DNA of 64,000 nucleotides from positions 13,702,001 through 13,766,000 of the forward strand of contig NC_135761.1 of the NCBI RefSeq assembly GCF_052425735.1, in the 5' to 3' direction. The notes beneath the pieces are model-generated. The model was not told where the DNA came from and ran no database searches. It saw nothing but the letters and a program-made list of their open reading frames with translations. Position numbers and translations under genes: made by a program. The stretch comes from Oculina patagonica (Eukaryota). This document shows, piece by piece, positions 18,335 to 54,306 of this stretch. The stretch's first letter is position 1. Each line of letters starts with the position of its first letter.

Positions 18335-18567
18335 ATGAAAATTATTATCTATTTGGCAGTTTTTATCGTTAAAGTGATACTTGGGACTCCTGTTTCCTTC
18401 AATGGCGAAGGATTCATTTCCTTTGATTTGAAAACAATACCAACCAACACTCGACAGTCTATTCTACAGTTAAGATTCCGTACAATCCACCCGAATGGTC
18501 TTCTAGCGTACAGTAAAGGAACGAAGGGACACTTTTTGCGACTGGAGATTATCAAGGGAAGATTACA
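18335..18567 (+). CDS. Caspr/Neurexin-IV-like paralog 1, exon 1 (signal peptide + start of LamG1)
   Basis: MKIIIYLAVFIVKVILG signal peptide; SFNGEGFISF...LRFRTIHPNGLL LamG motif; phase-2 donor gtaagt. Confidence 0.88.
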
Positions 18568-18894
18568 GTAAGTAAAAGTTGGTCTTAAATTGTCACGTGG
18601 AGTGGAAGGCAGTAGTTACTTTTGAATTCGGATTCCATTGTTTGGTCTGAGATCAAGAATAGCGTTCGTATCGAAGTTTTTCCTGAATTGATCATTTTAT
18701 CACTCAAGTTGCCCTCTCTAGCTTTTAAGTCTTGCTACTCAGAGTCAAATGATGCACTTTAGAGCCTGTGCTCTCCTAGAGCATTTCCTCAAATCAAAAC
18801 ATGTGCAAAGCATCTCATTCGACTGATTTAATCTTTACGTTAATATCTATCATTTCGTAGGAATCTAATCCGACTACAGAATGAGTTTCTTTAA

Positions 18895-19663
18895 AGTGCC
18901 TATGAAGTAAAAATTAATTAATGCTCATTTGAAAGACTTTTACAAATAAAGAAGAATGGCGTTTACCGTTTTGAAATATCTTCTTTCGTTTAGGAGATAT
19001 TCACGTTTTTGTGTTATGCAAATGAGGAAAGTGATGACGTCATAAATTGTTCCACTAAAAGATAGATCACAAAATCAAGGATATCTCTAAAAATATAAAG
19101 GTGATATTTCTGAAACTTGGCATCAGTAGTGACCTTCCTTAAAGGTGCAAGATGGCTCATACTATGACGTAACCATGGCAACACTATTGGTTCCAGGCTC
19201 TTTCTGACATAAACCAAACATCTCAATTTGCAACCCTTTAAAGTGGGACAGAGGGTCCAGCTTGGAACACACATAATGCCCTATTACCCTAACTCTCCTC
19301 ATGAGCTTGTTGGGTGTGGATCATCTTTGATTAAGCAAAAACTGGGGATATCAGTATTAATTAAAATAGGTATTTGCAGCAAAACTGTTGCCATGGCAAC
19401 GGCACGACAGGTGTCATTTTATGTCTTTTATGGTGTACATTTATCGTGCCAAGTTTGAAGAACTCAGCTCGAATATTCCAAGAGATATTCTTGATTCAAT
19501 GCTTCATCTTTTTGTGGAACAATTAACTTCGCTCATTTGCATAATATAAAAACGTAAATATCTCTAAAACAAAAAAAGATATTGCAAAAAGGAAAACGCC
19601 ATTCTTCTTTACTTTGAAAGGCCTTTAAAATAAACAGCAATTATTTTTTACTTCATAGGCACT
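18895..19663. mobile_element. Non-autonomous TTAA-TSD transposon (Kolobok-like)
   Basis: ttaa|agtgcctatgaagtaaaaa ... tttttacttcataggcact|ttaa with imperfect ~130 bp TIRs. Confidence 0.8.
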
Positions 19664-21324
19664 TTAAGTTTCCAAATAATTCACCAATGTCAGTTCAAGT
19701 CAGTCACGTGGTTAGATCTCTGATTTCTTGCATCAAAATGTGCTGTTTTGAAGACTGAGAAAAAGTGATTGCGAAGAAGTTAAGTTTTTGATTTAATCGT
19801 TTTCGTCGAAAGCTGAAATGACTGATCAACATTTTTCCTTTATTACCCACACAATAAGTGGTTAGTAGCTAGGTTTTCGATATTCGCCGGAAAGTCCGTT
19901 GCGACAGAACTACAAGTAGGTCGATTTTCATTCCGCATTTTAATGTCGTTTCTACTAATTTCTGGAAGACATTTAAAAATTTTATAAGAGAAATACTAAT
20001 AGTGACCACCAACCACAAAATATCCGTTCACATAGTAGTGCTTAAGAACAAGCGAAAACAGTTTTGTTTTTGAAACGAACAGTTGTATTTTAGAGGGCTT
20101 TTTGATTAAATGAAATCCGATTTGAAATGGCTTTCTTATTCTCAAACTTGAATCAGATAACGTATTTACTTTTGCACTGAACTGTATGATTTGTGTAAAA
20201 AAGAATTGTTTTTCAATTATTGAATATTGTATGAGAAAATCATTGAATGCAATAGGCTGTATAAATGAGCTGATTCAAACAATTCTTAAACCTCTTCACT
20301 CCATTAGGTTTAACCATTTTATTTCATTATTTTTGTGGTACTGTCAAGTTTATTATTTTTAGCAGGACGAATTCAGCAAGTCCAGCCATATAAATTAGAA
20401 CAATAATTTTTTTGTTAAGAATTTTTTTTTAGGGGAAAAATTGGTTCTTTTTTTTTTTACAATAATTTTCTAGTAAATTAGAACATATTGGTTCACACAG
20501 TCTTTATATAGATCGAGTTCCTAAATAGACCAATTTTTTTTTCGATCGTAAATTACACCTTTTTAAAATAAGTAACAAGAAATACAGTGTTTTCGTTTCG
20601 AGAGTTAGTGTAAACAATCGTTGTCAAATAATTTAACTAAATTTTAAAATTTTGACATGTTCGCAGTCTGCATAGTTCCTAAGAACCTGGCGAAGGACTT
20701 GACTGTGCCAATCGAATTTGAGACTGCTCCAAAACATGCTCCTTATTTGGAGCATATCACGTGACCTTGTTAATCAAAGAAATCTGTCGTGCAAATCGTG
20801 TTTAAAACACTTTTACATTCAAAATCTATGCATAAGGTCCGTACCGCAATGTTTCAATTGAGCGTCCTGGGCGTAAATTTACTTATGAAAAAATTCAAGA
20901 AGAAATACATTCAAGACAACGACTTCGCATCAGTTCGCATTCAATCAAGAATTTAGTGTTCGAGGATGTTCAATTCATGTATATCACGTGACAAGTTTGG
21001 TCCCAGTTTTCAACATACCCGCTTAATCTTTCTACTCTATGTCAATCGCTTTGGCAATATGAGCGCTTAAGTATTGGAGGGGGGCACTTATTGGGATAAG
21101 GGCGCTAATTCACTCAAGGGGGAGTGCTTATTAGAAAAGGGACGCTTATTGGAATCGAATCGAATCATTACAGTAAGTCTCTCTAAAATTGCGTCCATCT
21201 GTCTCACTTTAGACAACCTTAGGAAGCCTCTTTCACAAAACCTCCGATTTAGACAGGATCGAAATTCAGATTTTGAATTCCGTAATGCTAAAAATAATTC
21301 CTTTTCTTCTTCTTTCTTATTCAG

Positions 21325-23206
21325 TTATTCTTCATATCTTGGTGGAAGTCACCAGGGCGGCATTTCCACCATCACCTCACCAAGTAAAGACCTGAATGAT
21401 GACAAATGGCACAATGTTACGCTCACCAGAGAGGGACGGAAATCTGTTTTGTCTGTTGACGAGATCGCTACATCCAACATTTTTCAAGGAGATTACAAAG
21501 ACCTCGACTTGGTGAATGTCCTTTTCATCGGCGGAATGAAAGCAGAAAGTGACCAGCTCTTTCGCGTCAAAGCAACAAAACATTTCCGTGGTTGCCTTGA
21601 AGATGTGAAGTATGACAGCACAGATATCCTACTTGGCGCCATGATGGGTCTAAATGGGATTGCAACTCGTGGAGAAATTTCATTTAAGTGTAGATCCAGA
21701 CCAAATCGCATCATTTCTAGCACAAAACCGAATTTAAGCGTTAGGATACCTCACCGAAGATTGAGCACTGCCAATTTCTTCACTACAAGTTTTCAATTCC
21801 GCACGCACATCAAAGATGGTCTTCTTATTTCGTTCATCGCTCCTAAACTTAAGTGTTATCTTCTTCTCTCGAACAGCGCACTTGTCTTTGAAGTCACCGC
21901 TGTCAGCGGGTCTAAGACAGAGCTGAGACTGGGCTCTAACCTTGATGATAGTGAATGGCATCGACTGATACTAAGTCTCGCAGGCTCGGAAATTCGCTTT
22001 GGTCTTGATGGACAAGTTACAACAAAGCACGTTAATTACACTCGGTTGATTATGGGTTCCACGAGCAAGCTTCGACCAAAGATTTTTCTTGGCAAAGAAA
22101 GCAGAAGGGAAACGGTGGCATTGGGGTTTGTTGGGTGCATCTTAGATTTGAAAGTTCAAGACCGTGAAATACTTTTTAGGGATCTAAAAAGCAGAAATAG
22201 CCAGAATACCATCTTGAGATCATGTCATTTGCAGAATCGATGTGATCCCAATCCGTGCAAGAACAGAGGACAATGCTCGCAGGACTGGAAGCAGTTTTAT
22301 TGTAATTGTGATTACACAGAATTTGAAGGCAAACTCTGCGAAATTTCTGTTTACAAACCAACTTGCGAGGACTACAGATCTATGGGACTACGGGCCAGCA
22401 CTTTTTGCCTGTTGGACTCAGAGGGAATAGGAAACCCTTACACTGCACTCTGTAACGTGACAAACCCGTCACGAACATACACGGTTGTAACACATAACAA
22501 AATGACGGAAACTCCAGTGGGAAGGGCAAATCTTGATTTTTCGGGCTTGTTTTACAAACATGAAGTATCCTATACCGGTCCCACTGGAATGAATCAGATC
22601 AAGGCATTGACTCAAAAGAGCAAGCACTGCCGACAGTACATAAGGTTTCACTGCTTTGGCTCAAAACTTCTTAACACGCCTCGCGGACCCTCGCACGCTT
22701 TCTGGTTATCACGTGACGGCAATAGGCAAGAGTACTGGGGCGGAGCTGAACCCGGAAGTAAAAAGTGTGCATGTGGAATGGCAGATCCACCGTCCTGTGC
22801 AGGGAGAGCAAAATTCTGCAATTGTGATGTCAGGGATGAAAATTGGCGAGTGGATGAGGGGTACTTACGAGACAAAAGCACTCTACCGGTCACTGCTCTT
22901 CTTTTTTCTAAGAAAAGTAAGAGATCCGACTTTACACTTGGACCCTTGGAATGCTGGGGAAATGAAGGCGAAGAGTCAACAGAATCCATGGAAGAAAAGT
23001 TAAAAGCAAACCCGGTGGACTATCGATTAATGAAGGCGTGCCCCACAGGACCAAAGTTGCAGACGACAGTTAACGGAATCTACCGCGTGTCACAGCAACC
23101 CCAGAGCCGATCCCAAAGGCACCAGAAAAAACGTCTTGTAACTCTGGAAGTGCAACAATTCAAAAATGCCAAAACTTCTCCTCAAGCACTCGAAAGAAAA
23201 CAATAG
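21325..23206 (+). CDS. Caspr/Neurexin-IV-like paralog 1, exon 2 (LamG-LamG-EGF-fibrinogen-like); stops before the TM
   Basis: polypyrimidine acceptor at 21323-24 in frame with exon 1; LNDDKWHNV, FRGCL, CDPNPCKNRGQC, YWGGAEPGSKKCACG...CNCD motifs; spliced product 704 aa. Confidence 0.88.
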
Positions 23207-23302
23207 GTCCAGTATCAGGATCTGAAGATCACGGAAATTTGAGCCAGAACAGTTCCCAGCAAGCAAATGAGACTGCAATAGCAACAAGGATGGAGAAAGC
23301 AC

Positions 23303-23461
23303 GAAGGAGATGGTTTGTCAACAGTTGCTATTATCTTGATAGCTGGCGCACTGTTAATGTTTATTGCTTTGTTTATTGCACTTGACAGGATCAATCGTAA
23401 ATACAAATCTCCTTTCCCTTGTAAATTTGTACAAGCGCCGAAGATCCATGTTGCTGATTGA
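23303..23461 (+). pseudogene. Stranded TM + cytoplasmic tail of paralog 1
   Basis: EGDGLSTVAIILIAGALLMFIALFIALDRINRKYK...* resembles paralog 2 EIEMSTLAIVMISAAL; separated from the main ORF by three in-frame stops. Confidence 0.75.
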
Positions 23462-24147
23462 CTGAGAAACTTCTGTGATAGTTGGATGTTAGACTTAAGC
23501 GAGGTGCCCTGACAGAGGGCTGGATACTCAGTGTCTTTACACAGTCAATATGTAGATATGAGAGATGTGTAGATTTTCCTTTTTAAAAAGGCGTGTCTCA
23601 GTACTTCCAATAGCTTTCAACTGTGTCTGGGTCTTATTATCTTTGGCGAGCGATTCGTTATAACCCTTAGAGTGTACACTACACGGAGAGGCTCCGCCCG
23701 AAAGGGGTACCTTTTTTTCAGGCTCGAGGTATACAATGGGGTAGAGAGTTGAGATAGAAAAAGAAAAAGAAGGGAAAACTGTATTAAGATTTTTTTAAGT
23801 CCTTATAAATTATCTCGAACAGACGCATTGAATGAGAACGGGGTTGGTTATTCGAGTGAAACGTTTTGAAAATAGATACACTATCCCTATTGTAGACAGA
23901 TGTCTAAACGTAGGTACGACCATTCGGTCATACATCATGTAAATACAATGTTAATATCTGTATTAGTCTCAGAACACGACTTCCTAAGAGCACTTTCCTA
24001 AGTTCGTCATCGTTTTCAAAAAGATTCTTGCTAAGCAGCATTTATAATATTGCTGATATGCTCTGGTCTTTCGTTCTGGTTTGTCCTTACCACTAGCTGT
24101 AGTAATTTGTGATATTTTTTTTGTCCCGATTACAGTTTAGTTTGTGA

Positions 24148-24445
24148 GGAGGCCCGATGGCGCAGTGGTGAGAGCGCTCGCCTCCCACTCGAATGTGGCC
24201 CGGGTTCGATTCCCAGCCCGGGCGCTCGTATGTGGTTTGAGCTTGTTACTTGGTTCTCACAGTGCCTCTGCTCCCGAGGTGTTAAATTTGTACCGGCGAA
24301 TTTACTGCCGGGGTTTTCCTCCCATCCAGGGCAAAAATCAACACCTCTAAATTCGCAATTCGATCGGGAATCCGAGGGCCACAGGTTTGTCAGTCGAAAG
24401 ACTGTATGGGCCACTCGGCTCGTAAAACAGAGTTTATTTTTTTGT
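24148..24445 (+). mobile_element. tRNA-derived SINE
   Basis: A-box tggcgcagtgg, B-box ggttcgattcc; same family as 7805-8068. Confidence 0.8.
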
Positions 24446-25224
24446 TTTGTTTTAGTTTTTGTTTCCTTTTTTTCCCTTTTCCATTCTTTTCTTTTAATCT
24501 TGCCGATTGGTTCCCAGCATGAGACCTTGTATCCCTTTCCTACTAAGTCGTTTGGACATTTTTTCCTTTCATTGTATTTGAAATGTATGGGTAGTTATAG
24601 TCACCCGATAAAACTGTAAAAAATCTATTTAAAACTCTATCATTATATTATACTAGCCAGGCCTGTGACGTCAAAAGTTAGAAGCGATATCGGCATTACA
24701 GGAAGGGGACTCACCTGTTATTGGTTTCAGGTTGAAAGGATTTTAAGATTTTATGGCTGCAACATATATCTTATATAATTAATTACTACCATTGAGGATG
24801 TATAGATAAAATAACTAAACGGCGAGGTTGGAAAAATCTTTCCAGTGTTTCTGATTCTTTGGTCCAGACTAAATTATCTTACTTTCTATAAAACGCCAGT
24901 GCTCCTATACTTATGTGAACTAATATCCTTGCCAGAAAAAATGGACTTAACGTTTTAAACATAAGAGGGTCATGGGAATAGTTGATGAAAAATTATAATT
25001 AAAAAATTGTAGTTATTAGGTTTGTTTAGTGCCATTCAGTGGTATGTGTTCAAAAAAATAAATCCGCTTAGCTTGTTGTAAAACACTGAACAATGTCGAT
25101 TCACGAGGGTGAAAACACGTCATCTGAGTGGGAAAGCGTGACCGCAAGCTCTATCTACCTCTCCCACTGAATTAGTTTTAAGCCCATGCCTTTATCTCTT
25201 GGAATACTCATTCAAGCAACACCC

Positions 25225-25280
25225 TAGTCTCCTTCGCAGCTGTTATTTGGGATGTCACGCAACGGCTGCGAAGGACACTA
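25225..25280. mobile_element. Tiny palindromic MITE
   Basis: tagtctccttcgcagc...gctgcgaaggacacta with caacaccc direct flanks; related copy at ~33323-33365. Confidence 0.75.
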
Positions 25281-25844
25281 TCAACACCCTGGCTTATAGT
25301 CACTTGCTGATTATAATGACACCCATTTTCCTTTGGTGGGACCAAAATTTATCATTTCTAACCGATCCGACTGTTTATTGTTCTAGTCTTCTGCCACGTT
25401 ACCGTTCATGTCTGATGCAGCGTAACTAAAACGAATATTTTTGTGGTTATACCTGTCCAGCCTGTTCTGTGTAAAAAGCTAACCTTTAACTGAAGAACTC
25501 TTGAGATAGAGCAAGAAAGAGCCAAACTTCACTTCGCCCCACCTCCCCCCGCCCTCCTCTTACCAGGTATGTAAGAAAAGTTCATTGCGCAGTTAATAGC
25601 GCTGCGCACTTATGATGTCACAGAATTTTATCCCGCGGCGTGACTGAGACAACGAAACCGCTCTCCGTAAGAGCAATGTATGACAAAACGGAGTTAGTGT
25701 TCACTTCGGAGGCAGATTTAGCGATTGTTTCACCATACGATTGCAAAGGATTACACGTGCACCTTGACATTTGCAACTTATTCAGGTTTCTTCTTGCAAA
25801 TCATCTTTTTAAAACTAACGTGCTTTGATGGCGCAAGGGCTGCA

Positions 25845-25928
25845 CATTCTCGTCCCCATAGCCCTTTCGTTTCTCTTAGCCGGCTAGCCCTTGGCACGTT
25901 TTCTCGTGCCAAGCCGGCTAAGAGAATG
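25845..25928. mobile_element. Deleted palindromic MITE (family of 49176-49462)
   Basis: cattctcgtcccc...gagaatg flanked by gggctgca direct repeats. Confidence 0.75.
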
Positions 25929-25937
25929 GGGCTGCAC

Positions 25938-39279: not shown

Positions 39280-39437
39280 TTACACTCCCTCACGCTGACG
39301 ACGAACATCAGCGATCCTTTAACTTTGAAGTCCTCCCCACCAGGGAAAATGTCTCTAAGATAATTTGTGAGGAAAAGAATCTTTCTGACAAAAATAAGTG
39401 CATCTCGATCAATTGACCTTTTATTTTCGTTTTTCAG

Positions 39438-41661
39438 TTATCAAGCGTACCTTGGCGGACATCATCAAAGAGGAACACTGGAGATGAAAAATCCAAAAAA
39501 GGACTTGAATGACGGCCGATGGCATAACGTGACCTTGACACAGGAAGGCCGAACAGCGCGACTGAAGGTAGACTCTGTTGCTGCTTCAAACATCATTCAG
39601 GAAGACTATCACCATCTTGATTTAGACACAATCTACATTGGTGGAATGAAGCCCGCTACATACAAGTATTACGGTGTGGAAGGAACACGAAATTTTCGCG
39701 GGTGTCTGGCAGATTTGATATTCCGTGGCAAAAATCTAATCCGTGAAGCGAAAGGCGAACTTCTTGGATATGATATCAACGGCAAGGTGTCATTTAAATG
39801 CGAGGAATTGGACTATAGGGTTGTCACCATGACAAACCCAAACGTTGGATTTAGAGTGACTGTTAAAAAATTACCCGCAGATAACGACACATTTTACGCC
39901 AGTTTTCGATTCCGTTCGCACGTCGAAGAAGGGCTTCTCATGTCGCGGAGCGCAGTAAAAGTCAAGTTGCATTTACGTCTCTCGGCTGGCACGTTACTTT
40001 ATGACGTCACTGCTCCTAATGGATCGAAGACCGAGCTACACCTGGGTTCTAATCTTGATGATGGCGAATGGCATAGTGTGAACGCCAGTGTAAGAGGACG
40101 CGAAGTTCGTCTTCAGCTGGACGGACGAACGAAAACAAAACCTCTGAATCAATCGTTGTTGATGCAGGAGTTCGCAAACAGGTCTCGTTTGAAGATCTTT
40201 CTCGGCGGCTTCGACGACAACAGGGACTTTCCTGGCTTTGTTGGCTGCATATTAAACTTGCAAATCGACAGTCAGAAGATTTTCTTGAGGAATCTTAAGA
40301 AGAGTAAACATACCAATGAGGATTTAAAGTACACATGCCGCTTGGAAAACCGCTGTGAGCCCAATCCATGTAAAAATAGCGGGAAATGTTCACAGGATTG
40401 GCAAAGGTTTTATTGCAACTGCGAATACACTCGGTTCGAAGGAGAAAGATGCGAAATTTCCAAATACAAGCCAGCGTGTGAATATTACAGGGCTATGGGA
40501 TTGAAGAAGAGTATGCCTTGTTTACTTGATTCTGAAGGAGAGGGGAACCCTTACACTGCGCTCTGTAACGTAACGGACGATCCTAAACGAACGTACACGA
40601 TTATAACCCACAATAAAATGACAAAGATTCGAGTTAGCGACGCGAGAATTGTTGGATCGCATTACAAACACGAGATTACTTACTCGAACTCGATCAGTAT
40701 GCAACAAATGACACAGTTAATAGAGAAGAGCAAAGAATGCCGTCAGCACATTAGATTTCATTGTTTTAGTTCTAAACTTCTTAACACACCTCGCGGACCT
40801 CCACACGCGTTCTGGTTGTCACGTGACCACGAGAGACAGGATTACTGGGGCGGAGCCGAACCCGGGAGTAAAAAGTGCGCATGCGGAATGATCGACCCAC
40901 CTTCTTGTGAAGGCACGGCGAAGTTTTGTAACTGTGATAACAAGGATAGCCAATGGAGAGTAGACGAGGGATTTTTGACGGACAAAAGCACCTTGCCTGT
41001 CACCGGACTAGAATTCAACAAGAAAAGTGCCAAGTCTGATTTTACGCTCGGACCATTGGAATGCTGGGGAAGCGCAACAAGACAAAAGATTCCCAAGCCG
41101 CGCGACCCCACGGTCGATATGAACCGATTAAAGAATGCTTGTCCGAAGGCGGGGGATCCCACACCTACTTCCCCTCCCACTGTCTCCCCCACTACCACTC
41201 CTACTCCGACATCTGCGAGAAGCCTGTGTCCGAGTGAGGATGGAGAAGAATGCGCGAACTCGTCTGTTGCATTCTCCGGGGTGACCACCATACCAGCCTC
41301 TGGAAGCGTCGAAGAGAGTAGGCAAACTACTCCGCAAGATCAGGAAAGTACCTCGGATGACGAAGAAATTGAAATGTCTACCCTCGCAATAGTCATGATA
41401 TCCGCAGCGTTGGTGGTCATTGTTCTGCTCTCAATGAAGTTTGCGCTTCCTCGTGTTATCATGTGCATTCGGACTCACAGTAAGCGTGGTGAGTACATTG
41501 TCCCCCCGGCTGGATCGTCTGGATATCCAGCCAGGTTACTGCCGCTTGTAACCAAGCGGTCGTCGATCCGGGGGAGGCAGTTGACACAGTGCAGTGCAAA
41601 TGCAAATGGAAGATATGTCGATGCCAATGCATCGGGTGGGCTGAAGTCATATTGGGTATAA
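39438..41661 (+). CDS. Caspr/Neurexin-IV-like paralog 2, exon 2 (LamG-LamG-EGF-FBG-stalk-TM-tail)
   Basis: acceptor ttttcag in frame with exon 1; intact 822-aa product; TM LAIVMISAALVVIVLLSM; ends KSYWV. Confidence 0.92.
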
Positions 41662-42609
41662 AGATGGCTTTTATTGACCGAAAATAAAATAACGCAAGTC
41701 CACGGTTGGCAGGATTAAGAGACAGAGCGGTCCACTTTGAAAGACATGGAATGGTCTGTAGAAAACACCAACTGGAAAGTAAATTGAAACTGCACGTGCG
41801 GTGGATGGAGGTGTGATAATCGTCAGTGCGCATGGCAGAGATAACAAAGCTGTTGCAAGTTCTAAAAATAGCTTCCAGGGACGCAGTGTGCCTTTTGAGA
41901 AGAATAATAAAAAGATGCCACTTTGTTCAATGCAAAATGTTTAAAATGATGTAACATACGAAAATAATTATCGATGTACGTATAGTTAATTGAATATTCA
42001 TGAACAACTCTCGTTTAAAATATGGCAATTCGCTTTAAATTGTAAAAAAAAGAAGCTTCAACATCTGATTTAATCTCTATAGGATGTTTTGAAAGAGTTG
42101 ATGAAAAAAGATTGAAGGAGTGCTGGGAAAGAATTTTACATGTAATTTTAGGCTGGCTTATATTAAACTACATAGAAGGCATATCATTTGTACTGTGATG
42201 CACATTGTTTTCAGGAGCGGGGCATGCAGAAAAGGTTTGTAACATCTTTCATTATCAGGAGTTAGAAACCGACTATTTAATTTGGGGTGTTGCAAACGGA
42301 AAAAGGAGGAAAAAATCGTGCACAAAAATAAGAATGAGAAAAAATCAAGCAAGCCCCACCTGCTCTTGGGATTTTTATAGAAAAAAATCTTGCAGAGGGT
42401 TATGTTGGTATACAAGAAATCTTGCAACTACCATTGAACGGTGAAAAAAATTCTTATTCAGAAGAATTTGCCCCACCCACCCCACTTTCATAAATTTAAT
42501 GGTCCGTCCCTTACTGTGATCCAGTTAATGCTCGAGCTGACTTTCATTTGAATCCGAACTTTTGCGTCATAACAAATTATGCTAATAAAAACTCACAGGA
42601 GCTATGCAA

Positions 42610-42996
42610 GGCCCGGTTCAGACGCCGATCTTTTCATGAGCCGAACCTAATTCTTTGAATTAAGTACATGAAAAGATCGGCGTCTGAATCAAATAAGAAC
42701 GGCTATTTCAATTTGGAACGGCTCACCCGTTCTTCCCGCCTGGCTTGGCCTAAAATTTCGCCTGTGGAACGCCTTTGGAACGGCTTTGATTCAGACGCCG
42801 TACTTTTCAGGTGCCGATCCTAATTCATAAATTATTCTAATGTATTTCGACTGGTTTTATTGCAACTGTATTAGGAACGGCTTCGGAGCAGCCAAAAAGT
42901 ATGGCGTCTGAATCAAGAGGCGTACTTTTGTCAATTGGGTCGGTCCAAATTCGAATTAAGTTCGGCTCGTGAAAAGAACGGCGTCTGAACCGGGCC
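42610..42996. mobile_element. Harbinger-like palindromic MITE
   Basis: ggcccggttcagacgccg ... cggcgtctgaaccgggcc; 3-bp flanks caa/taa; internal repeats of the ttcagacgccg motif in both orientations. Confidence 0.8.
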
Positions 42997-43486
42997 TAAG
43001 TTATTTTTTTGATGTACAGAATAGACCTTGTCACGGTATCGAATTCGGCGCCATGTTTGACGGGTAGCCAAAGTGGTTAGAAATTACAGATGTTTGTATA
43101 AAAACCTTTGCTTAGTATCTTGAATATGGTAGGGCCATTTTTTCAACAGGCGTCGTGGCGTAGCTCCTTTGAGAGGTCCATAATTGTAGGGATTCGAACA
43201 CGCCCACCAAATCTATTCTGCAGCGCAATCTCGGAATAGGTGATATCACAGACATAATATGGGCAAGGCCTGAGTTGTTTAAAGGATAGATGACGCTATT
43301 TAACCGATAGAATCACTATCCAGTGGATAGCGTAGTTTGTTTTGCCAACATTTATCCGTCGGATAGTGATTTAACTGGTGGATAGCGTTATCCACCTTTG
43401 AACAACTGGGCCCAGTAGTAAAGCAGTTCTCGTAAGCTTGTAATTCAAGTCACTACTGGTCTTCTAGTGTAGCAGTTGTTATTGTG

Positions 43487-43913
43487 CCCGGGGAGAGGAA
43501 GGGGGGGGGGGGGCACTCGAAAAAGTTTTATACAGGGAGGCTCCGCCCCGAGGTCCAACCCCTTACCCTTTTATATACCATTTTGACAGAAAAAGTACCC
43601 CTTTCGTATACCTTTTATTGAAAAAATACCCCTTACATATACCTACACGACATGACATATACTTAAAACAGGACGTTTTCTTGACATTTTTATGTAGCGC
43701 TTTATAATAAATAAAGGACGATACAGCCATAAGTTGCGTCTGTTCGAAATATTTACTTTAAAGGTAATTAAATATCTTAATGCCCGAATTTCCTACCCTT
43801 TCATATACCTCAACTTGTGAAATCCCTACCCTTTTATATACCTGAAGCCTGAAAAAGGTACCCCTTTCGGGCGGAGCCTCCCCGTATAGGCCATTATAGG
43901 GAGTACCCCCGGG
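43487..43913. mobile_element. CCCGGG-ended MITE
   Basis: cccgggg...cccggg ends and the gaggctccgcccgaaaggggtacc motif; fragment at ~23665-23760. Confidence 0.6.
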
Positions 43914-45972
43914 CCTGGTTATTGTGTTGGAGGCAGGGGGATTGCCCCTGTTGTTTGTGTTTATATTGTTCTCTTGAAAGGTAGCGAGCCACTCATTGAT
44001 CTGGGACCTGGGTACATGTATCAACCAATAAAAACTTTCAAGCGTTTTATTACACGATTAACGATAATATTGATATAACAAGACTAACGGGTTATACCTT
44101 TTCTAAACTAGGAATATGAAAGGATAAATACCAGTTAGTTAATATACGGTTAGGAGCAATGCGAAGAACAAGCGGCGTGCCCAGGAAAGTGTGCGTAGCC
44201 ACATTTCTTGTTACAGTTACTTCACATTAGCTATAGTCTTATTTACATGGTGCTTATAAGAATCTGGGAAGCATTGTTTCTACATTCCCTTTAATCAAAA
44301 CTATAGCAAAATTATTTTGAAAATACTCAAATCTAACTGGTTATCAACAGGCCGTATTTGTGAAGAGGATCTGTTTGGGGCTTTAACTAGTAGATGAGAA
44401 TGGGTCAAAATGTTATCTTTTAGCCAAGAAATGACGCGTTTTTTTAATAACTGAGGTCTGCAAAATTTACTGAAAGCTGAGAAATGAGATAACGGAGATT
44501 TCAGCAGCCCCATCCAGACCCTCTGAGCAGTAATAGGACAGGTTTTGTGTCATACCTTTGTAGATCGCGCTACGTCATTGGCGCGTGCACTTATTGCACG
44601 GTTACGCTGCAATGGGTTTCTTTTTACGTGGATGTCGAAACAAAGCCACGTGTTGTCCTTTTATTCACCAAAGTAATTTCTAAAATTTCGTTGTGGCTAT
44701 GGTTAATTGCAGTGGTAGCGGGATTAACATATTCCTGTCGTTCAATTCTATAAACAAAATATCGACGAAATTAAGAATTAGATGTTTTCTAAACGATTTA
44801 AACTTAGGGAAAAACTAAATTTTTCCAGATTTTCTTTAACCATGCACTACATCCCTGGCTAATTTAAGATTATATACAGACTTTTTCTCAACAGTTTACG
44901 GAATCATCAGTGAGCGCCGAAACCTTGTTAGCAAAACAAGCGCTCGGCACACAAAAGCTCTTCGCTTACTTTTGATTCACACAACAGTTAAAAAACACAA
45001 TTAAATCTGAAAGCCTGAGTTCTCCACAATTTTCATCAGTCCCATTTCCAAGAAAAAAAAATTAATTGTAACAGACCTGCCCGGTAAGTGTAAGCACTAT
45101 AATCGATTAGAACAATTTAATTCGACCTTACAAAAGTCTCCAAAACTATTGAGGGGTGTAACTAAAAGTTTTCATAACCTATGACGTTTTAACAAGAGAT
45201 CGTCTCAAAGAAAAGACATTCGAAGGCTTAATAGGAGTCTGGTTATTAAGATGTCTTTGGATACGCACGCAATGCGTGCAAATTGTTATGCCCGTTTCCA
45301 GACTGTAAGCGCGTCACAGACTCGTTCCATTTGATCTATTTTCATTCTCCAACAGTTCTACAACACCCAATCTTTACAAACATTAGATCACGATCCTTGA
45401 ATATCAAGAGCATTGGCTTAACTTAAACAAGAAGGTTCTTCTGTCACAGCAACAATCCAGTTTGAGTGTCAAACGCAGCAAAGTCCTGGAAAAGAAACCA
45501 GAACAAAAGAAGATGAGAACAAAAAAAGCTGAAAATAATAAAATAACATAATTATATCCTTCCTTGTTACAAGTCAAAGATCGTACTTAGCGATTGGGTT
45601 AACGTTTAGTCAACAATTAATAGAAATCATCAAGGGGGTCATTAAGGTGCACAACTTATCTAAAAGATTATATGGCTAAATTAAGTTTATGCCCAGAAGT
45701 AAGGAGCTACTAGCCGGGTATCACGCGTATATGATTGATTAAGATATCTTCATCTAGAAAAGGTTTTGAAATAGAAAGAATTGTAGGAAAAGGGAGCCGC
45801 TACTCTTTTATAATAAAATGTTTAAAAATATTGCTTTCGTTTATTGTTATGTTAAAAGGAGACGTCATATCCGAACATTGCAATGTCTCAAGGGAACTAT
45901 CTCTTTTGTATGATAAAATATGTTATAAAAATGCTGCTTTCTTTTAGTATTACCTTTCTTTCCAATTGATAT

Positions 45973-46907
45973 TCACAGTTTGGAGGTAGAAGCTGAAAAG
46001 GAGACATATTTTCTGACGTGCGAGTCCCGATGGACCGAATGGTACACTGTCTGCCCGTTACTCATGTTGTAGGACCCAACCTCCACCGCGTCATGATTAA
46101 TATCATCCAGCTGTACCACATCCGGGGAATCCGTGCGCACTGAATGACGGTACACCTCAATATCCGGGATACTCTTTTTCCTTCTGCAGCTCTTACAGGA
46201 AACACAACACACGTATCTGCGGCCAGAGCGCTTCAGAAAAACGAAAATTATCACACATACGAGGAGTATGAAGGCCAGCACAGACGATGTTATCAAGATT
46301 ATAAACCGTGCGTCATACACCACACCTCCTTTGACGCGCGTGATATAAGAAACGCTTCCGTTAGTTATGACCAACACTTTGGGGGCAGTCTTCGGATTAA
46401 CTGGCGTGACGGTAGGCAGCGTGACTGTCTTGCCTTTGGTAGTGATGCTTGAGTGCACTGTCACGCCATCTTTACCTGTGGTAATGGAAGAATGTACGGT
46501 CACACCATCGCTCTTGGTTTCGTGACTAAACACTGACGTCACCAGGGTTGAGTTTTTATTCGTTGCGATAGTTGTCGTCATGGTAACGTGATGTTTAGGG
46601 GAAGATAGAGTATTTCTATTATTACCTGGGCTTGGCGTGGTAGTAAACTTTTTGCTTACTGTAGAAGTCTCCGGTGGCCATTGAGTGCCAGTCAGGGGAG
46701 TGCTCGATGCTGTTGCTACGTCAGCTGTAGGGGGTGGATTGACAAGTCTGCAAGCGGACGAGATAAAATTTGCATTGCTTACTTCTCCTGAAGGCTGTCC
46801 TGAGGAACCGAAACATTCTAACGGGCCGAGAGTAAAGAACGAGTCCTTGGCATCAGAGGCGAACTGTAGCATGTTCACCGGCAATGAAGACTTGTCTTGT
46901 AAATAAC
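45973..46907 (-). CDS. Caspr/Neurexin-IV-like paralog 3, exon 3 (end of FBG, mucin-like stalk, TM, tail)
   Basis: phase-1 acceptor; GYLQDKSSLPV...FTLGPLECFG; TM FIILITSSVLAFILLVCVIIFVFL; ends TSKL. Confidence 0.9.
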
Positions 46908-47457
46908 CTGTTAGGAACAAATTATCGTGTCATATGAGTCAAATGTGACGGTTTTTATATTGTACATACTTTTATTGTCCCAGGGCCGCAATGGATACAA
47001 ACCTCGTTGCTGAATGGGTTACCCTGGTGTAATAAATTTCCTTACCTTACCTTAACAACTTAACATCAAACCGCTTCGCACTATTGGCTTCATGATGGAC
47101 AGTAAGGCACCGCTCGCGGAACTGAGGGAGGGTGGAGGGCGGAACTTAAGGGTAAGAAATTTGGAGGAGAGGGAAGGGGCGGGACATTTTCTGGAATTTC
47201 AAATAGGTCATTACTGCTAGTTGCACAAACAACCTAACGTGACAAAGCAATAAAAACAACTTATCTTGTTATATAAAGAAAAAAAACTAATTTCCCTAGC
47301 CTGTTTCATCATACGCTGCCAAGAATTCAGTTAAAGTTTACACATGGCAGGTAGGCAATTCTAAAAGCAAATTCTAACTGAAACTTTCTTTGTTATAAAC
47401 ACGGTGTTATAGATATGTGACACTGAGTAACGCGTTGCGTGACGGTCTATGACTCAC

Positions 47458-48950
47458 CAGAATCCTCTCTCCACTTGTCATCACTATCAGCATCACAATT
47501 ACAGTACTTAGAGGGGTCCGCACAGGTCTTTGTCACTCCACATGCGCACTTATTGCTCCCAACAGGCGCGCCTCCCCAGTAGTTTTGTGGGACAGCGGTA
47601 CTCGACAACCACTGCACATGCTCAGGACCAATAGGTGAATTCAACAGCTTAGAATTGTAACAGTCGTACCGGATGAATTGGCGACAGTTTGCGCTGCGCT
47701 TTATCAATGCTCGGATACTCGCCAAGTCACTTACGTACGAAATACGTTGGAAGTAATGACTGGCGAGGTCTGTGGCGCCCAGTGTGACTTGATGTTTGCC
47801 CTCCTTGTCGTGATTAATAACAGTCTTGGCAGCATCAGAGGCTGTCATATTACACAGCACATCAAAGGTCCCCAGGGGACCCGTTCCATCAGGGTCCACT
47901 TTACAATACGCGTCCTGGACCATTCCCAGCGCTTTATACTCTTGGCACGTGGCACGATAAAGAGGAATCTTACAACGGTCCCCATGGTAAAACGTCCCTT
48001 CGCAGTCACACCGAAAAGCCTGCCATGTCTGCAGGCAGCGACCGCCATTTCGACATGGATTTGGGAAACATTTGCTAGCAATTTCGCATCGGTTTATAAC
48101 CGCGCCGCTAATACGAGAACCGCTTAAACTGGTTAACTTAACTAGATTCCCGTTAAGCTTAATTCGATGCATACAACCAACAAAACCAGTTTTTTGTGTT
48201 CCGTAGCCAATGTAAACGCGACTTCGAAAATCACCAATTCCCGCCAACCACGGGTTTTCATGACGTAATTCTGGCTTCGTATCCAACTGCAACCACAATT
48301 CTTTGCGAGTTACTCCGGCAGTGACGTCATGCCACATGCCGTCATTCAAGGCTTCACCAACGCTGATTTTAATTGGTTTATCGGGTTCCACTCGAACTTC
48401 CAGCTCAAGCTTTCCGGACACTAGCGAAAGATACAGGCGAGAGTGCGCGCTCTGTTTGTAAAGCAATATACCATTGCCATCGTAGGTACGAAAACTGAGC
48501 TCCACAGAGAAGTTCTTGGGGGAATGCCTACTAAGCTTCAAATGAGTATCAGGCTCTGGGAAATTGACCGGAACGTAGCCTGTATCAGGGCAGTAAAAAC
48601 GAACGAAGCCATGTGTATCATAATCAGAAAGGTCCATCTTAGCGCCATAGAAAATATCAATGAAATCAAAGTACAGATTTTTCAAGCAGCCGTTGAAATT
48701 TGGTGCGGCCAGAGCTCTTCCAGAGTCACTCGTATCCAGCCCTCCAACAAAGACGAATGTATCAAGGTCAAGACGGACGAAAGAGCCTGGTGTTGTTGTC
48801 TCGCTCCTCTCTTTATCGACGGTAACTACCACCGTATGCTCGTTTCGATCCACTTTTACTTCGTGCCATTTATTGTCTGACAAGTTGCTCCCCAGGAGAA
48901 CTGTGTGCTTCCCAGAAATAGTCTTGGAGCTGCCAAGGTTGATGGTAAAC
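47458..48950 (-). CDS. Caspr/Neurexin-IV-like paralog 3, exon 2
   Basis: RFTINLGSS...LSDNKWHEV, CFPNPCRNGGRC, YCKVDPDGTGPL, YWGGAPVGSNKCACG; acceptor at 48951-52, donor gtgagt at 47457. Confidence 0.92.
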
Positions 48951-49175
48951 CTAAAAAGGAAGATAAAACAACTAGTTAGGCTAAAATATTTTATATGCCC
49001 ACTCCTCGTTAAAACCTATCCTAGTAGTACGCAGAGAGTTTGTGACAGAAAAAGAAAAATGGGTGCTGGTGCAGCGATAAGAGAGCTATAGCCAGCTAGC
49101 CTTCCAGGTAAAGCCTTTGGGAAAGGGTTAGACTGTGAGGACTCCATCTTCTTCTTAGTCTTTTTCGTCTTCACG

Positions 49176-49462
49176 CATTCTCGTCCCCATAGCCTTTCAT
49201 TTCTCTTAGCCGGCTGGGCCTTGGCACGAGAAAACGAAGGGCTCTGGGGACACAGGATTTCCAGTCCTAGATTCTCGGAATTCCGATCTTCATGTATGCA
49301 GTGTCATGATGTTTCAAAAGAATGTATGCGAGATTCGTTACGTTTTCGATTTCCGCCAATCAAAAAATTCGAATTAATTCAAACCCTGTGTCCCCAGAGC
49401 CCTTCGTTTTCTCGTGCCAAGTCGGCTAAGAGAATTACGATAGGACTATGGGGATGAAAATG
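49176..49462. mobile_element. Palindromic MITE with 9-bp TSD nested in an older tagactg...tagtcta element (49129-49517)
   Basis: ~85 bp inverted arms; gtcttcacg at 49167-49175 and 49463-49471. Confidence 0.85.
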
Positions 49463-49630
49463 GTCTTCACGCTCAACGGACTGAGGAAAAAAAACTTAAA
49501 GGACTGTTCGTAGTCTAGAGAAGGAATGGCGCAGCTGTCAGATAGCTCGCCTATCACCAATGTGACTACGCTCGATCTCCGCCGCCTTCTCGAATCCGGT
49601 CTTTGTTTGAGCCAACAATGTGACCTAAGC

Positions 49631-49811
49631 TAGCCTGCGAGCAGGCTCACTTTGGGGCACGCGCGGGAACGACACGCGGAAGCAGCGAAGGCGCGACACG
49701 AGCTCACTGTATTGGCGCGTCTCCAGCAGTCTCCTTCCCGCCTTATCGCGAGTCGCGCGTGCCCCATTGTCGCTTTCGCGCGTGCCCCAAGGTGAGCCTG
49801 CTCGCATGCTA
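49631..49811. mobile_element. GC-rich palindromic MITE with 9-bp TSD
   Basis: gacctaagc|tagcctgcgagcaggctcac ... gtgagcctgctcgcatgcta|gacctaagc; repeated at ~56202-56381. Confidence 0.88.
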
Positions 49812-52800
49812 GACCTAAGCGCGATCCCTGATCTGTAGGTTTTTCTCCAGGCTCCCTAATTTTACTCCTTATGCAAAAACCATCACTTTTAAACCTTGTT
49901 CGATCTGGAAACAGTGGATGAAGAAGCAGTCTGTGATTTTGCTGCCGCACAACTTATTTTGATTACTATTATCAATTTTTTTGCACACAATATTAAGCGG
50001 TTTTCATTTCTTTGGCGGTTTTTTTTCCGCGACCCCAATTATCGAGGGGCGAAATTTGCCCCTGGTGAAACAGTTTTCTACACGAGCTATAAAGAAGTTA
50101 AGGAAGCTCTTGAATTCAAATGGTCAGCAAACAAAGTTTTCCAATAAAGGGATATTTAAAGCATTTTTGAAGTAACAACCGTGAAACAGCGGCAGGGAAA
50201 GATCGCTATCATGACATATTACTCGCAGACTTTGGTAATATTTGCCGGCAGCGAACTTGAATTAATTAATCTTCAGCACTTATTCTGAAACAGCTGTTGG
50301 ACAAAAGAAAGGACGCTTTGGTCACGATATTCGGTTTTGTTGAACAGGAGTAAATATATAGAGAGAACAGATCGTTTTAAACGAGAGAAGATTATTTTAC
50401 TCCGTGTTTGTGAACTTTTGAAAAATTTGATTATTTTGTAAGCGTGCGCGTCGACTCGATGTAGTTAACAGTTATTGAAGTAGATGATATAAGTGTTCTC
50501 AATCTAAATATGTGATTAAAACTGAATAAGATAAGCTTTATAAGTGGTTGTTTACAAACTATGTGATAATCACTTTAAGTTTGTAAATCGCTGATAATTG
50601 TCTTTTCATGGCAGCTAAATTACCGCGAAACCGCAAAAACACAAACCAGGGGTCCATAGATTTCTGTTAAAACCCCATGTTTGGCCATCGCAAAACAATG
50701 TTTCGATTGTCGTCACCCTATGTAGACTCAACTTTTTTGAAAAAGAATGAAAAATAGATTCAATTAAAAGCCCGGACACGCTGCAATAAGCCGTGCATTA
50801 CACGCAACATTTTCACTCGAGTGCGACTGTGTCACCTCACGTCACGCAATATGGCCCGAAATGTTTCACCGTGTGTTCGGGATAAGTTTGCTCTGTGATC
50901 TTTTAATTTCTTTTACATGAAAGTTCAGCGACATGTTATAAATTGCCTCGTTGAAAGGAATTGCCCGACACCCTTTCCGTGTCGAAAATCGCGTCAGTCT
51001 TTCTCCGGACGGCCCACCAATTGAGATTTTATGGCGATAGAAAAAGAAGGCGCGGCAGTTGTGAATGTAAAACTGTGCATCAAGGACCCCAAACTCGATT
51101 TTCTATTGTTAGACGAAAGAAAGGTTCAGTGTGGACAACAAATAACTTGTGGAAATTTTGTTTTCGTCAGATGAGTTCGTCGGAAATTTACAATACTTTA
51201 TCAATTTTATATCCTCGCTTTCAACGCTCTTGCCAAATTTAATTAACGGTTCGTAGATTTTCAGCACCTACTACATAAACGAGAAAGATTCTTTCTAGTT
51301 TGTGTGTTATTTGCTAACATTACGAACCGTTTTACCTTGGCAGCACATAGGAAGTGTATCTTATTTTTGGCTTAAGAAAAAACTGTTTCTTTTTGTATCC
51401 AGATAATTAAGTTAACAGTTTTCTTAAATACATTACAGTGACCATATGGATTCTTCCTACATCTGACCCCTACATTTTGGCACACAAAATGGCAAAAGAA
51501 GTTGCAATGAAGTCGCCCTATTAACTAGAAAATGGAACCCAGTGCAATGCTAAAGATACACGCGAACGTGCTGCTTGTAGCAAATTAAAACAACGACAAA
51601 AAAATCGCAAAAAGTAATTGCTCAATACAAAGTTAAGCAACGAGGATCAGACAAAAATTTAAAAATGTGTAGAAGAACTGGAAAGTAAGTTTGATAAGAA
51701 AGCGAGTCACAATTAACTGCAGATGTCTACTCGGGGTAAATTGCAATGAAATTTTTATTTTAAAGGGTTTTTTCTTTTTGAAAAAAAAAAAACACCTTTA
51801 GAGGATCACGTACTCCTGGCGAATTAATTAACTTTATTATGCACAAGGAGTTGATAAGTTGATACAAAAAATAAATAGGTATATGCCGCCTGTTTTCTAA
51901 CGCCTGATACTGATCGAGTTAATAAGTTCTGTATTGACTATCAACACGAATTATGGATAAAAACGCGCCACTATTTACCCTTGTCGTATCTATATTGCCG
52001 ACCAATGTTATCGACTGGACCACTTACAAAGTTCGCACGAAAATTATTTCCTTGTTAATTACACACGCACGCTTATTTCAAGGTCAGATATACCATTGTC
52101 ATACACTTCTTTCAATGTTACTTTGAGAATGTGTCGATGAATAAAGACAATATCAGCTGATGATTTGCCTAACTCTTATCACCTGTCAGCTTTCCAAAGT
52201 AATGTTATTGTATGTAGATTTTAGTTATTGATCAGTCACGGTTATACTTTTGTCTATTATTTTGGTTTAGACATGTAAACTACTGGAAGAGCTGCTTAAA
52301 ATAAGCAAACGCACTAAGCTTAAGGGTTTTCTGTGTTATTTTCAGCAGTGTTAAATTCGTTCCTTTCTAAGTTGAATATCAAATGCTGCAAAACTGGCGA
52401 AGCGACAAGGTCTTTTAAAAGCGTTAAATTAAAGGACCTCACTTTGTTCTAAGCATTCTAGCGCCTAGATGACTACATCGTTGACTAGAACAAATACGTT
52501 GAAACAATATTACAATAATTGGACACTTTGAAAGCAAGATAACAATCTACAAAGTTAGAAAAAACTATTTATTTGAAGTCTATGACATTGAATTATCGCA
52601 CATCCTTGAAATAAATACCATCCAAATCTCACGCAGTAGTGAGAAAATAATATATGATGTCATCCTTGATGAGAATTTCACGATAAAGTTTTATATACTT
52701 GATATAAATTTTTTTCCATACAATTGGATCACGGGTTCGAAGTTTTATTACAAATAATTGGCCACGTGCAAGAACCTCTGTAACAATAATTATTCTGATA

Positions 52801-54046
52801 TTTTATTATCACCCAGACATAATTTAAGGAGCTGAACTAGTTCTAAAGAAAATATTTATATTTAAAAACCTTTCAAAGTTTTCTCTCTGTTTGTCCTGTG
52901 ACAGGTGTAAAGATAAAAGGTAACAAAAGAATTCCGTTTTGTATTCTTTGTGCAATAAAGAAAACTTTATATTTTGTAAACTATCTTCTTGTGAAAGAAT
53001 TTTACAATAAATAGACGCTATTTACATCGATAGTGAGCTCCACCTTAAAATTTGCCCATTGGTTAAAAAACAAAGGTTAAAAACAAGGCTGTTTTTCTCG
53101 AGCTAAAATTTCCAAATTGTAACAGAGATGTACTTTAAAACGTAATTAATTTATCACCCTGAGTCGTCAAAAATCTTTCCCCTAGTCAACGCTTTGTGTT
53201 ACACAGATATTCCAGCCGTTATACATCGTTTATATCAAATGAAAATAAAAAGTTTCTAATGGAAGGAAATTACTAGAAATCTAGAAAAAATAAACAACTA
53301 CGGGACATTTTTCGAGTTTGTTTTGCATTTTCTCCATGTTTAATTCAATAATAGCTCATTCTACCCAACATCGCTATGTAACAAAGCCCGCAAGGCAGCT
53401 GAATAAAGCTTTTAGTGAAAGAGTGCGCGGTGATTTTCGATTATATTTTAAGTTGAATTCTTGGTTAGAACTTTGTAAGTGCGAAAGTGCAAGCTCGCAT
53501 TTGACTATTTGTCAGACTGCTATAAGAATCAATACGCGTGTCTCGGTCATTAAGTGAGTGAAAATGCATTATATTTGTGGAGATAACAATGTGCAATCAA
53601 GGAGGCTGTAAAACGTATAACTGACGCTGAGCTATAGATGAACTGCCTTTGTTCAATTTCAAAACATCTCACTTCTTTAGTCGTCTAATTTTCACCTCCT
53701 TTCAATGCAATTAAACCGTGATCGACAATATACGCATTCTTTGTTTACTAACCCAAACGCCACAAACTTTTGACAAACTTTGCTTTGAAAGTTGACAACA
53801 GGCCGGCTTAGCTTAAAACTAAAAGCTAGATTAAAAATCAGCCTTCAGTTACTTAAAACGAGAAGTGGCAAAGAAAAACAGCTTGTTTCGACATCTTTTT
53901 GTAAAAGATGCGAAACTATACAAAACCCATGTCTCTTAGGTGAAAACGCTCAAAATGCAGTTTCTAGCATTTGTGTTTCGCTACGATGGCGAATAGAAGG
54001 TATTTCCTGAGTTTTTTAAGAGGAATTTAAAATGATCTTTTCCTAC

Positions 54047-54306
54047 CTGAGTTGTCCGTGGATTAGCTCGATCGTAATGAAATCTCCCTGAGAGCCGCTA
54101 CTGTGCACCATCAAGCCAGAAGGGCGGAATGTTTTAAACGAAAATGTGATGTGATTCGTCTTCGTTGCAATACTGTTGGAACGAAGATCGTAGGTAATGT
54201 AGCCTGTTCCTTCCATGTTTACTTCAACTGCCGAAGAAATACATGTTTGATCGACGATTATGATGAAGTATAAAACACATATCAAGAACCCCCGACATGA
54301 AGTCAT
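54047..54306 (-). CDS. Caspr/Neurexin-IV-like paralog 3, exon 1
   Basis: signal peptide + FSFKTFRPSGLMVH; phase-2 donor gtagga; three exons splice to 895 aa. Confidence 0.9.

Follow-up and report, generated by a model that had tools for sequence, protein, structure and literature searches.

The 64-kb window analysed here (C4:13702001-13766000 of the 529-Mb genome of the coral Oculina patagonica) is likely to contain a conserved scleractinian cluster of short cnidarian type I membrane proteins of the Caspr/neurexin superfamily, in which paralog 1 (P1) is followed by a Mab-21 gene, paralog 2 (P2) and a convergent paralog 3 (P3). The three paralogs correspond to GenBank ACROYT_G012396, ACROYT_G012398 and ACROYT_G012399. 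They represent an annotated, cnidarian-wide family that probably already has a name, and not a local expansion or a new class of system. Each protein carries an N-terminal Caspr block, made up of two laminin G domains (LamG1 and LamG2), an EGF domain and a procollagen C-propeptide-like head referred to as fibrinogen-like (FBG-like), on a stalk of the O-glycosylation type.

Domain architecture of the short Caspr-like proteins

An earlier note on this DNA had described three paralogs with the order signal peptide, LamG1, LamG2, EGF, FBG-like domain, stalk rich in Ser, Thr and Pro (S/T/P), transmembrane helix and tail, and this order was found at the positions listed in Table 1, with the P1 transmembrane helix separated from its ectodomain as assembled. 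Each first exon begins with a methionine and a signal peptide, and the reading frame of P2 exon 2 is unbroken from LamG1 to the stop codon. The models of P1 (704 aa) and P2 (822 aa) are identical residue for residue to those in GenBank, while the P3 model is 895 aa long. P1 and P2 stand in tandem, and P3 is convergent and more divergent, as described before, with 33% identity between P3 and P2 versus 49-56% between P1 and P2. Proteins of O. patagonica itself, from GenBank or from its genome, were not treated as independent evidence for P1-P3, and synteny was taken from other corals.

Pfam recognises two LamG domains and one EGF domain in each of the three proteins and nothing else; the FBG-like part and the stalk remain unannotated. 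No discoidin (F5/8 type C) domain was found by Pfam in the exons, and tblastn searches with the N-termini of CNTNAP5 and NrxIV gave no match at E<=1 in the window. No further LamG exons are present in the 64 kb, where the C-terminal halves of Caspr proteins match only LamG1 and LamG2 of P1-P3. Together with the open frame of P2, the Pfam and tblastn results agree with the earlier description of proteins that lack both discoidin and the LamG3-EGF-LamG4 half and carry a mucin-like stalk instead. The stalks of P2 and P3 contain 41-42% S/T/P, versus 20% over the whole protein, and that of P3 carries an internal GVTVHSSITT repeat. The layout of alpha-neurexins, with three LNS-EGF-LNS cassettes and no FBG-like module, is not found; two adjacent LamG domains, an EGF and an FBG-like domain occur instead, and the matches to neurexin structures are limited to the LamG and EGF parts.

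Transcript-length contigs of related corals encode products of 827-863 aa on contigs of 3.1-3.3 kb, spliced at the predicted junctions and with no added domain; a signal peptide is present at the start of the P2-type products, and the P3-type one begins at an internal methionine. Full-length cDNA had been proposed as a check of the architecture, and these transcript-length orthologs add neither discoidin nor an extra LamG domain.

The architecture can be compared directly with that of Caspr/CNTNAP1-5, Drosophila neurexin IV and C. elegans NLR-1, which are likewise membrane proteins of type I and have a colinear LamG-LamG-EGF-FBG block (29-36% identity). The block of the short forms is 29-32% identical to CNTNAP1, CNTNAP5 and neurexin-4 over 71% of the query. 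Unlike Caspr, the short forms have neither discoidin nor LamG3-EGF-LamG4, a stalk of 100-170 S/T/P-rich residues stands in place of the latter, the tails of P1 and P3 are unrelated to those of Caspr, and the family is confined to cnidarians in the searches run.

Fold of the FBG-like head

About 230 residues past the EGF domain align colinearly, without large gaps, with the FBG-like region of CNTNAP1, CNTNAP5 and insect neurexin-4. The alignment contains about 26 invariant columns, including all of the cysteines and a CNCD...W..D.G...LPV motif. The AlphaFold model of this part has a pLDDT of 92 and superimposes on the same region in models of Caspr, neurexin IV, axotactin and NLR-1 with TM-scores of 0.72-0.80 at 24-37% identity, the Caspr models alone giving 0.77-0.80. 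A search of the ESM Atlas returned only Caspr and neurexin clusters.

Among solved structures, the best matches are procollagen C-propeptides (COLFI; PDB 4ae2, 5k31 and 6fzv), which cover the whole domain with E 3e-8, probability 1.0 and a TM-score of about 0.5, yet share only 13-16% sequence identity with it. The match to fibrinogen gamma is weak and partial (E 2e-3, about 113 columns), and the fibrinogen C-terminal domain (FReD, PF00147) has no Pfam match in P1-P3. The term 'fibrinogen-like' is thus correct as a statement of homology to Caspr, while the modelled fold is nearer to the procollagen C-propeptide. The models suggest that the same may hold for the FBG-like domain of Caspr proteins generally, which bears on how receptors of the Caspr type might oligomerise or bind matrix.

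Gene structure

The first-intron donors of P1, P2 and P3 all lie after base 2 of the same LamG1 Arg/His codon, and the acceptors match. The earlier note had used this shared phase-2 intron to tie the three paralogs together. The intron is indeed present in all of them but is not diagnostic, being found also in a long form encoded on C7 that is described below; it therefore dates back to the ancestor of the family as a whole. P3 has an additional phase-1 intron within the FBG-like domain, which also occurs in paralogs elsewhere in the genome (the C2 and C1512 genes given in the next section).

The GenBank model of P3 (746 aa) differs from that given here in having an internal methionine start without a signal peptide, part of the stalk spliced out and the conserved tail replaced. 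A continuous exon 3 of P3 is backed by the orthologous locus and by a transcript-length ortholog.

Phylogeny, distribution and synteny

At least three more short-form genes are found in the genome, making at least six in all (C4:6885032-6887989, C2:38921206-38923665 and C1512:99248-100726). In the first of these, the cytoplasmic tail is long, acidic and rich in Ser and is read in a second, overlapping frame; this could reflect an intron or a frameshift. The match on C1512 contains two TAA stops. Among the database searches run, short forms were found only in cnidarians; the examples, 700-835 aa long, come from Orbicella, Montipora, Stylophora, Actinia, Nematostella, Exaiptasia and the hydrozoan Hydractinia. 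RefSeq models of 820-835 aa are named 'contactin-associated protein-like 2', '...protein 1' and '...like 5-3-like'.

In trees built on the shared LamG-EGF-FBG block, the short forms fall into one clade, apart from the long form. The proposal of a distinct subfamily of the neurexin superfamily holds, the short forms being distinct both from canonical Caspr and from the C7 long form. P1 and P2 form sister scleractinian clades, whose joint sister is a group of single-copy actiniarian genes (Shimodaira-Hasegawa-like approximate likelihood ratio test, SH-aLRT, 99). P3 groups with orthologs from Nematostella and Exaiptasia, the Hydractinia sequence is nested among the short forms, and P1 has the longer stem (0.43). 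On these sequences, the tandem duplication giving P1 and P2 is placed before crown Scleractinia (the robust/complex split) and after the split from anemones. The ratio of nonsynonymous to synonymous substitution rates (dN/dS) of P1-P3 is 0.12-0.20, which indicates strong purifying selection on all three.

The order P1, Mab-21, P2 and convergent P3 recurs in another coral assembly, and the convergent P2/P3 pair in a third. The Mab-21 gene, which has the Pfam domains Mab-21 and Mab-21_C, also stands between P1 and P2 in another coral, with the two proteins 80% identical in amino acids. In Nematostella, the P3 ortholog is not within 10 kb of the P2-type gene. The description of the cluster as locally expanded does not survive these data: at least three copies lie elsewhere in the genome, the P1/P2 duplication is old, orthologs exist in anemones, the architecture reaches hydrozoans and the gene order is conserved among corals. 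P2 is the ancestral anthozoan type. P1 would be a tandem duplicate confined to Scleractinia, with a faster rate of evolution and a short new tail in place of the old one, and P3 an older paralog with a Cys-rich tail.

Montipora foliosa XP_068712778, a 1555-aa protein named 'axotactin-like', was considered as a long form and rejected, as it is a head-to-tail fusion of two P2-type copies. Montipora has a recent, nearly identical tandem duplicate of the P2 type, and the name 'axotactin-like' is misleading. LamG-EGF-LamG loci at C1:47.32, 47.39 and 47.62 Mb and at C13:37.48 Mb match neurexin better than Caspr, and may represent neurexin genes of the coral, either classical or short.

Cytoplasmic tails

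Juxtamembrane motifs binding 4.1/FERM proteins and type II PDZ ligands at the C-terminus are characteristic of neurexin and Caspr tails. The tails of the P2 clade and of the anemone co-orthologs are almost invariant from coral to Nematostella, with the pattern RTHSKRGEYIVP...GYPARL.PLV...SGG[IL]KSYWV. The bilaterian tails aligned with them are those of NrxIV, SRHKGEYLTQED (SRHKGEYLTQ)...KKEWFI, and neurexin, NRDEGSYHVDE...KEYYV. The juxtamembrane K-R-G-E-Y motif of P2 looks like the 4.1/FERM-binding site of glycophorin C, neurexin IV and paranodin, and its C-terminal S-Y-W-V looks like the type II PDZ ligands EYYV and EWFI. Among the short forms of the cluster, it is the P2 tail that resembles those of Caspr and NrxIV by sequence, with a K/R-G-E-Y juxtamembrane motif and a hydrophobic C-terminus like that of PDZ-type ligands.

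P1 orthologs have a common short tail, DRINRKYKSPFPCKYI.APKIHVGD, without 4.1 or PDZ motifs. P3 orthologs share a Cys-rich tail from coral to Nematostella, also without motifs of the 4.1 or PDZ type, which in P3 itself ends in STSKL. Because the tails of P1, P2 and P3 differ, it is proposed that the three proteins may bind related extracellular ligands and be coupled to different intracellular signalling.

The long form and coral skeleton proteins

A NrxIV-like long form is encoded by a multi-exon gene on the reverse strand at C7:32547500-32558200. It has the organisation LamG-LamG-EGF-FBG-LamG-EGF-LamG-transmembrane helix, colinear with Caspr, and a tail RHKGEYHTHED...KKKEWYI. No discoidin match was found in the approximately 12 kb upstream of its first matched exon, and a review describes cnidarian CNTNAP orthologs without discoidin (PMC10084454).

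A protein called 'neurexin (contactin-associated protein)' is a core component of the coral skeletal matrix (PMC8382919, PMC4890752). In a published alignment, the skeleton proteins of A. digitifera (aug_v2a.24512, 06122 and 06123) and of A. millepora (ELP_ACRMI, B8UU78, 1124 aa) pass from the FBG domain to a third LamG domain and terminate in KKKEWYI. B8UU78 is 31% identical to the FBG domain of P2, no closer than human Caspr. By sequence, the skeleton protein 'neurexin/EGF and laminin G' (ELP_ACRMI) probably has its ortholog in the C7 long form. The short forms were also tried as candidates for this skeleton protein and rejected, as the published alignment and the fold search assign the skeleton proteins to the long form.

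That P1-P3 might be the 'neurexin' of coral septate junctions or of skeleton attachment is accordingly unlikely. Such a role would agree with their homology to neurexin IV and Caspr, with the 4.1-binding-like motif that P2 has in common with septate-junction NrxIV, with the presence of a contactin-associated protein in the core skeletal matrix and with the restriction of the P1 duplicate to Scleractinia, which would fit calcification. However, the published skeleton proteins continue into the third LamG domain, end in KKKEWYI and have unrelated N-terminal sequence, their FBG domain is no nearer to P2 than that of human Caspr, and their ortholog in this genome is the C7 gene with the ...KKKEWYI tail. 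Moreover, the epithelial junction or adhesion role is assigned to the long form (alpha-neurexin/NrxIV) in anemones and Stylophora (PMC11294457), and the P2 and P3 types occur in skeleton-free anemones and hydrozoans.

The short forms share with the cnidarian long form (alpha-neurexin) the superfamily, the lack of discoidin, the phase-2 LamG1 intron, the FBG-like module and the kind of tail motifs. The long form differs in having LamG3-EGF-LamG4, the KKKEWYI end, a separate and very long branch, a place in skeleton proteomes and an assigned role in epithelial adhesion.

Relation to the short neurexins of Nematostella

Cnidarian-specific short delta- and epsilon-neurexins have been described, and knocked down, in Nematostella by Guzman et al. 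2024, who present them as separate, neuron-enriched genes whose products carry a PDZ motif (PMC11294457). Their C-terminal regions are unannotated in domain databases, they are described as sister to the cnidarian long form, and knockdown of the delta genes impaired peristalsis (PMC11294457). In the same study, alpha-neurexin of Nematostella acts in epithelial adhesion and is treated by the authors as equivalent to the NrxIV of septate junctions in Ganot et al. 2015 (PMC11294457). The immunogen peptide used for alpha-neurexin, SFRTYKSSGTVL (PMC11294457), resembles SFKFRTYKKAGNLL of the C7 long form.

The short Caspr-like genes are probably among the delta/epsilon-neurexins, most closely of the epsilon type, a match made by published description and not by accession. 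Like the published proteins, they are short, found only in cnidarians and encoded by separate genes, they have a C-terminal region unannotated in databases, and P2 ends in the PDZ-type motif SYWV. They differ in that no Caspr-type or procollagen-like domain is described for the delta/epsilon-neurexins in PMC11294457. The accession numbers of their counterparts in Nematostella (XP_001631324, and the P3-type gene named 'CNTNAP2 isoform X2') do not occur in the paper texts searched. P2 would organise cell-cell or cell-matrix adhesion through links to FERM and PDZ scaffolds, and would most likely do so in neurons, a role that follows from the probable identity with the short neurexins. The earlier note had regarded the cluster as its best candidate for an undescribed system, a view overtaken by the RefSeq models, which already carry the name 'contactin-associated protein-like', and by the published accounts (PMC10084454, PMC11294457).

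It is rather unlikely that the short Caspr-like proteins lie outside the delta/epsilon-neurexins and form an unstudied cnidarian receptor family, with a procollagen-C-propeptide-like head in common with the massively expanded cnidarian ficolin-like (CniFL) proteins. If this alternative were true, the shared head would suggest that the two families have a class of ligands in common or that the head oligomerises, and P1 would be an offshoot specific to Scleractinia that gained a new tail and was recruited as corals began calcifying.

Several points weigh against the reading of the locus as a conserved cluster of short Caspr-like membrane proteins that correspond to named neurexins. The split between short and long forms has an SH-aLRT value of only 83%, with the long form on a very long branch, and dS is near saturation. 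The correspondence with the delta/epsilon-neurexins relies on their published description rather than on accessions, and the 4.1-binding and PDZ-ligand motifs are read from resemblance to bilaterian tails and from general knowledge of such motifs. The contigs from public runs are short, none of them extends over exon 1 and they show no splice joints, so that splicing in O. patagonica is deduced from the sequence and from transcript-length orthologs.

Ficolin-like relatives of the head domain

More than 600 candidate matches in the genome concern the FBG-like part only, and the loci sampled encode collagen-Ig-Ig-FBG proteins in large tandem arrays (Table 1). These CniFL proteins have the same Caspr-type FBG-like head as the short forms, with 35-43% identity and all of the cysteines conserved. 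They differ in having a collagen stalk and Ig domains ahead of the head, in lacking LamG and EGF domains and in forming arrays of hundreds of genes.

The abundance of such heads at 35-43% identity, together with a cGAS-like Mab-21 gene whose position between P1 and P2 is kept in another coral, raises the idea that P1-P3 are a set for recognition of non-self or microbes. This is very unlikely, as P1-P3 are single-copy orthologs under strong purifying selection (omega 0.12-0.20) and lack the signs of copy-number turnover that recognition families typically show, and the P2 tail is near-invariant across Hexacorallia and looks like a ligand of junction or synapse scaffolds. Gene neighbourhood by itself is also weak evidence in eukaryotes.

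The interrupted frame of P1

The reading frame of P1 stops at 23206, 36 codons short of the transmembrane helix, and three in-frame stops lie between the two. In the assembly, P1 is therefore not the complete protein from signal peptide to transmembrane helix that the earlier note had described. Relative to contigs from public runs, the frameshift zone contains seven insertions of 1, 1, 3, 1, 1, 1 and 1 bases, nine in total. Three public runs, carrying two organism labels, supplied the contigs for this comparison; X1 and X2 were used throughout and X3 for the last insertion. Removal of the nine extra bases gives one open frame from the stalk through the transmembrane helix to the tail, and the stalk of this mended frame matches the stalks of P1 orthologs. 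The P1 ectodomain is under purifying selection (omega 0.20 against the ortholog). The break is peculiar to the present assembly or individual; as assembled, P1 would give only a secreted ectodomain, unless the insertions are consensus errors.

It is possible, if the less probable outcome, that P1 is a pseudogene or that the locus is partly an artefact of assembly, which would leave two functional genes instead of three. The three stops between ectodomain and helix, arising from seven indels in 235 bases, point in this direction, as do the GenBank P1 model, which ends at 704 aa, and a second artefact-like feature in the window, the 6.1-kb duplicated blocks around a gap. Against decay, the ectodomain is intact and constrained, the transmembrane helix and tail are readable in frame and conserved, the frame is open in contigs of three other runs, and the indel lengths twice sum to a number divisible by three, an unusual pattern for slow decay.

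Three stretches, lying within the intron of P1 or beyond its downstream end (18891-19678, 23619-23815 and 24013-24200), have contig depths of hundreds to thousands in three runs. They are probably repeats of the short interspersed nuclear element (SINE) type, judging from loose ends that resemble a tRNA T-arm (GGTTCGATTCC).

Assembly gaps and feature positions

The 145-N gap lies in unconserved intergenic DNA, 1474 bases past the Mab-21 open reading frame and 3545 bases ahead of the P2 start codon; it touches no exon described here, and the DNA on either side is colinear with that of the orthologous locus in another coral. A second gap, of 500 N (55543-56042), is exactly abutted by two blocks of 6.1 kb (49470-55542 and 56043-62123) that are 94.9% identical, and this repeat doubles P3 exon 1 together with most of the first intron of P3. 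The blocks are probably overlapping haplotype contig ends joined at scaffolding, which is the simplest reading because they abut the scaffold gap exactly.

Table 1. Positions of the short Caspr-like genes and associated features (window coordinates, except where a contig is named)
Feature	Position	Strand	Content
P1 exon 1	18335-18567	+	Met, signal peptide, start of LamG1; donor CA|GTAAGT, phase 2
P1 exon 2 as assembled	21325-23206	+	Rest of LamG1, LamG2, EGF from 22241, FBG-like 22352-22960, partial stalk, to first in-frame stop
P1 frameshift zone	23066-23300	+	Seven small insertions relative to contigs from other runs
P1 transmembrane helix and tail	Helix 23315-23383, to stop 23461	+	Tail DRINRKYKSPFPCKF..KIHVAD; in the ectodomain frame, but severed from the ectodomain in the assembly
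Mab-21 / cGAS-like single-exon gene	29547-30848	+	Between P1 and P2; outside the short Caspr-like family
N gap, 145 N	32322-32466		Unconserved intergenic DNA
P2 exon 1	36011-36255	+	Signal peptide, start of LamG1; donor CG|GTGAGT, phase 2
P2 exon 2	39438-41661	+	Rest of LamG1, LamG2, EGF from 40354, FBG-like 40465-41070, stalk
P2 C-terminal part	Helix 41377-41448; RTHSKRGEYIVP 41470-41505; KSYWV 41644-41658	+	Transmembrane helix, juxtamembrane motif, C-terminus
P3 exon 1	54306-54047	-	Signal peptide, start of LamG1; donor AG|GTAGGA, phase 2
P3 exon 2	48950-47458	-	Rest of LamG1, LamG2, EGF, most of FBG-like; donor G|GTGAGT, phase 1
P3 exon 3	46907-45973	-	End of FBG-like (to 46807), 166-aa S/T/P stalk, transmembrane helix 46234-46305, Cys-rich tail
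P3 exon 1, second copy	60647-60906	-	260/260 identical to 54047-54306
CniFL-type arrays	C4:10.8-11.9 Mb, C4:20.33-20.43 Mb, C8:34.15 Mb, others		Match to the FBG-like part only

Implications

Three kinds of protein that the coral literature and automatic annotation have lumped as 'neurexin' or 'contactin-associated protein' can now be sorted into the long NrxIV-like skeleton protein, the short forms and the CniFL heads. What is added to the published picture is the separation of the short forms from the skeleton 'neurexin', the recognition of three conserved tail types and of a procollagen-like head common to the CniFL arrays, and the finding that the break in P1 belongs to this assembly or individual. 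The locus offers a clean case in which an ancient adhesion ectodomain has been kept while its cytoplasmic coupling diversified into one tail of the neurexin/Caspr type and two unrelated conserved tails.

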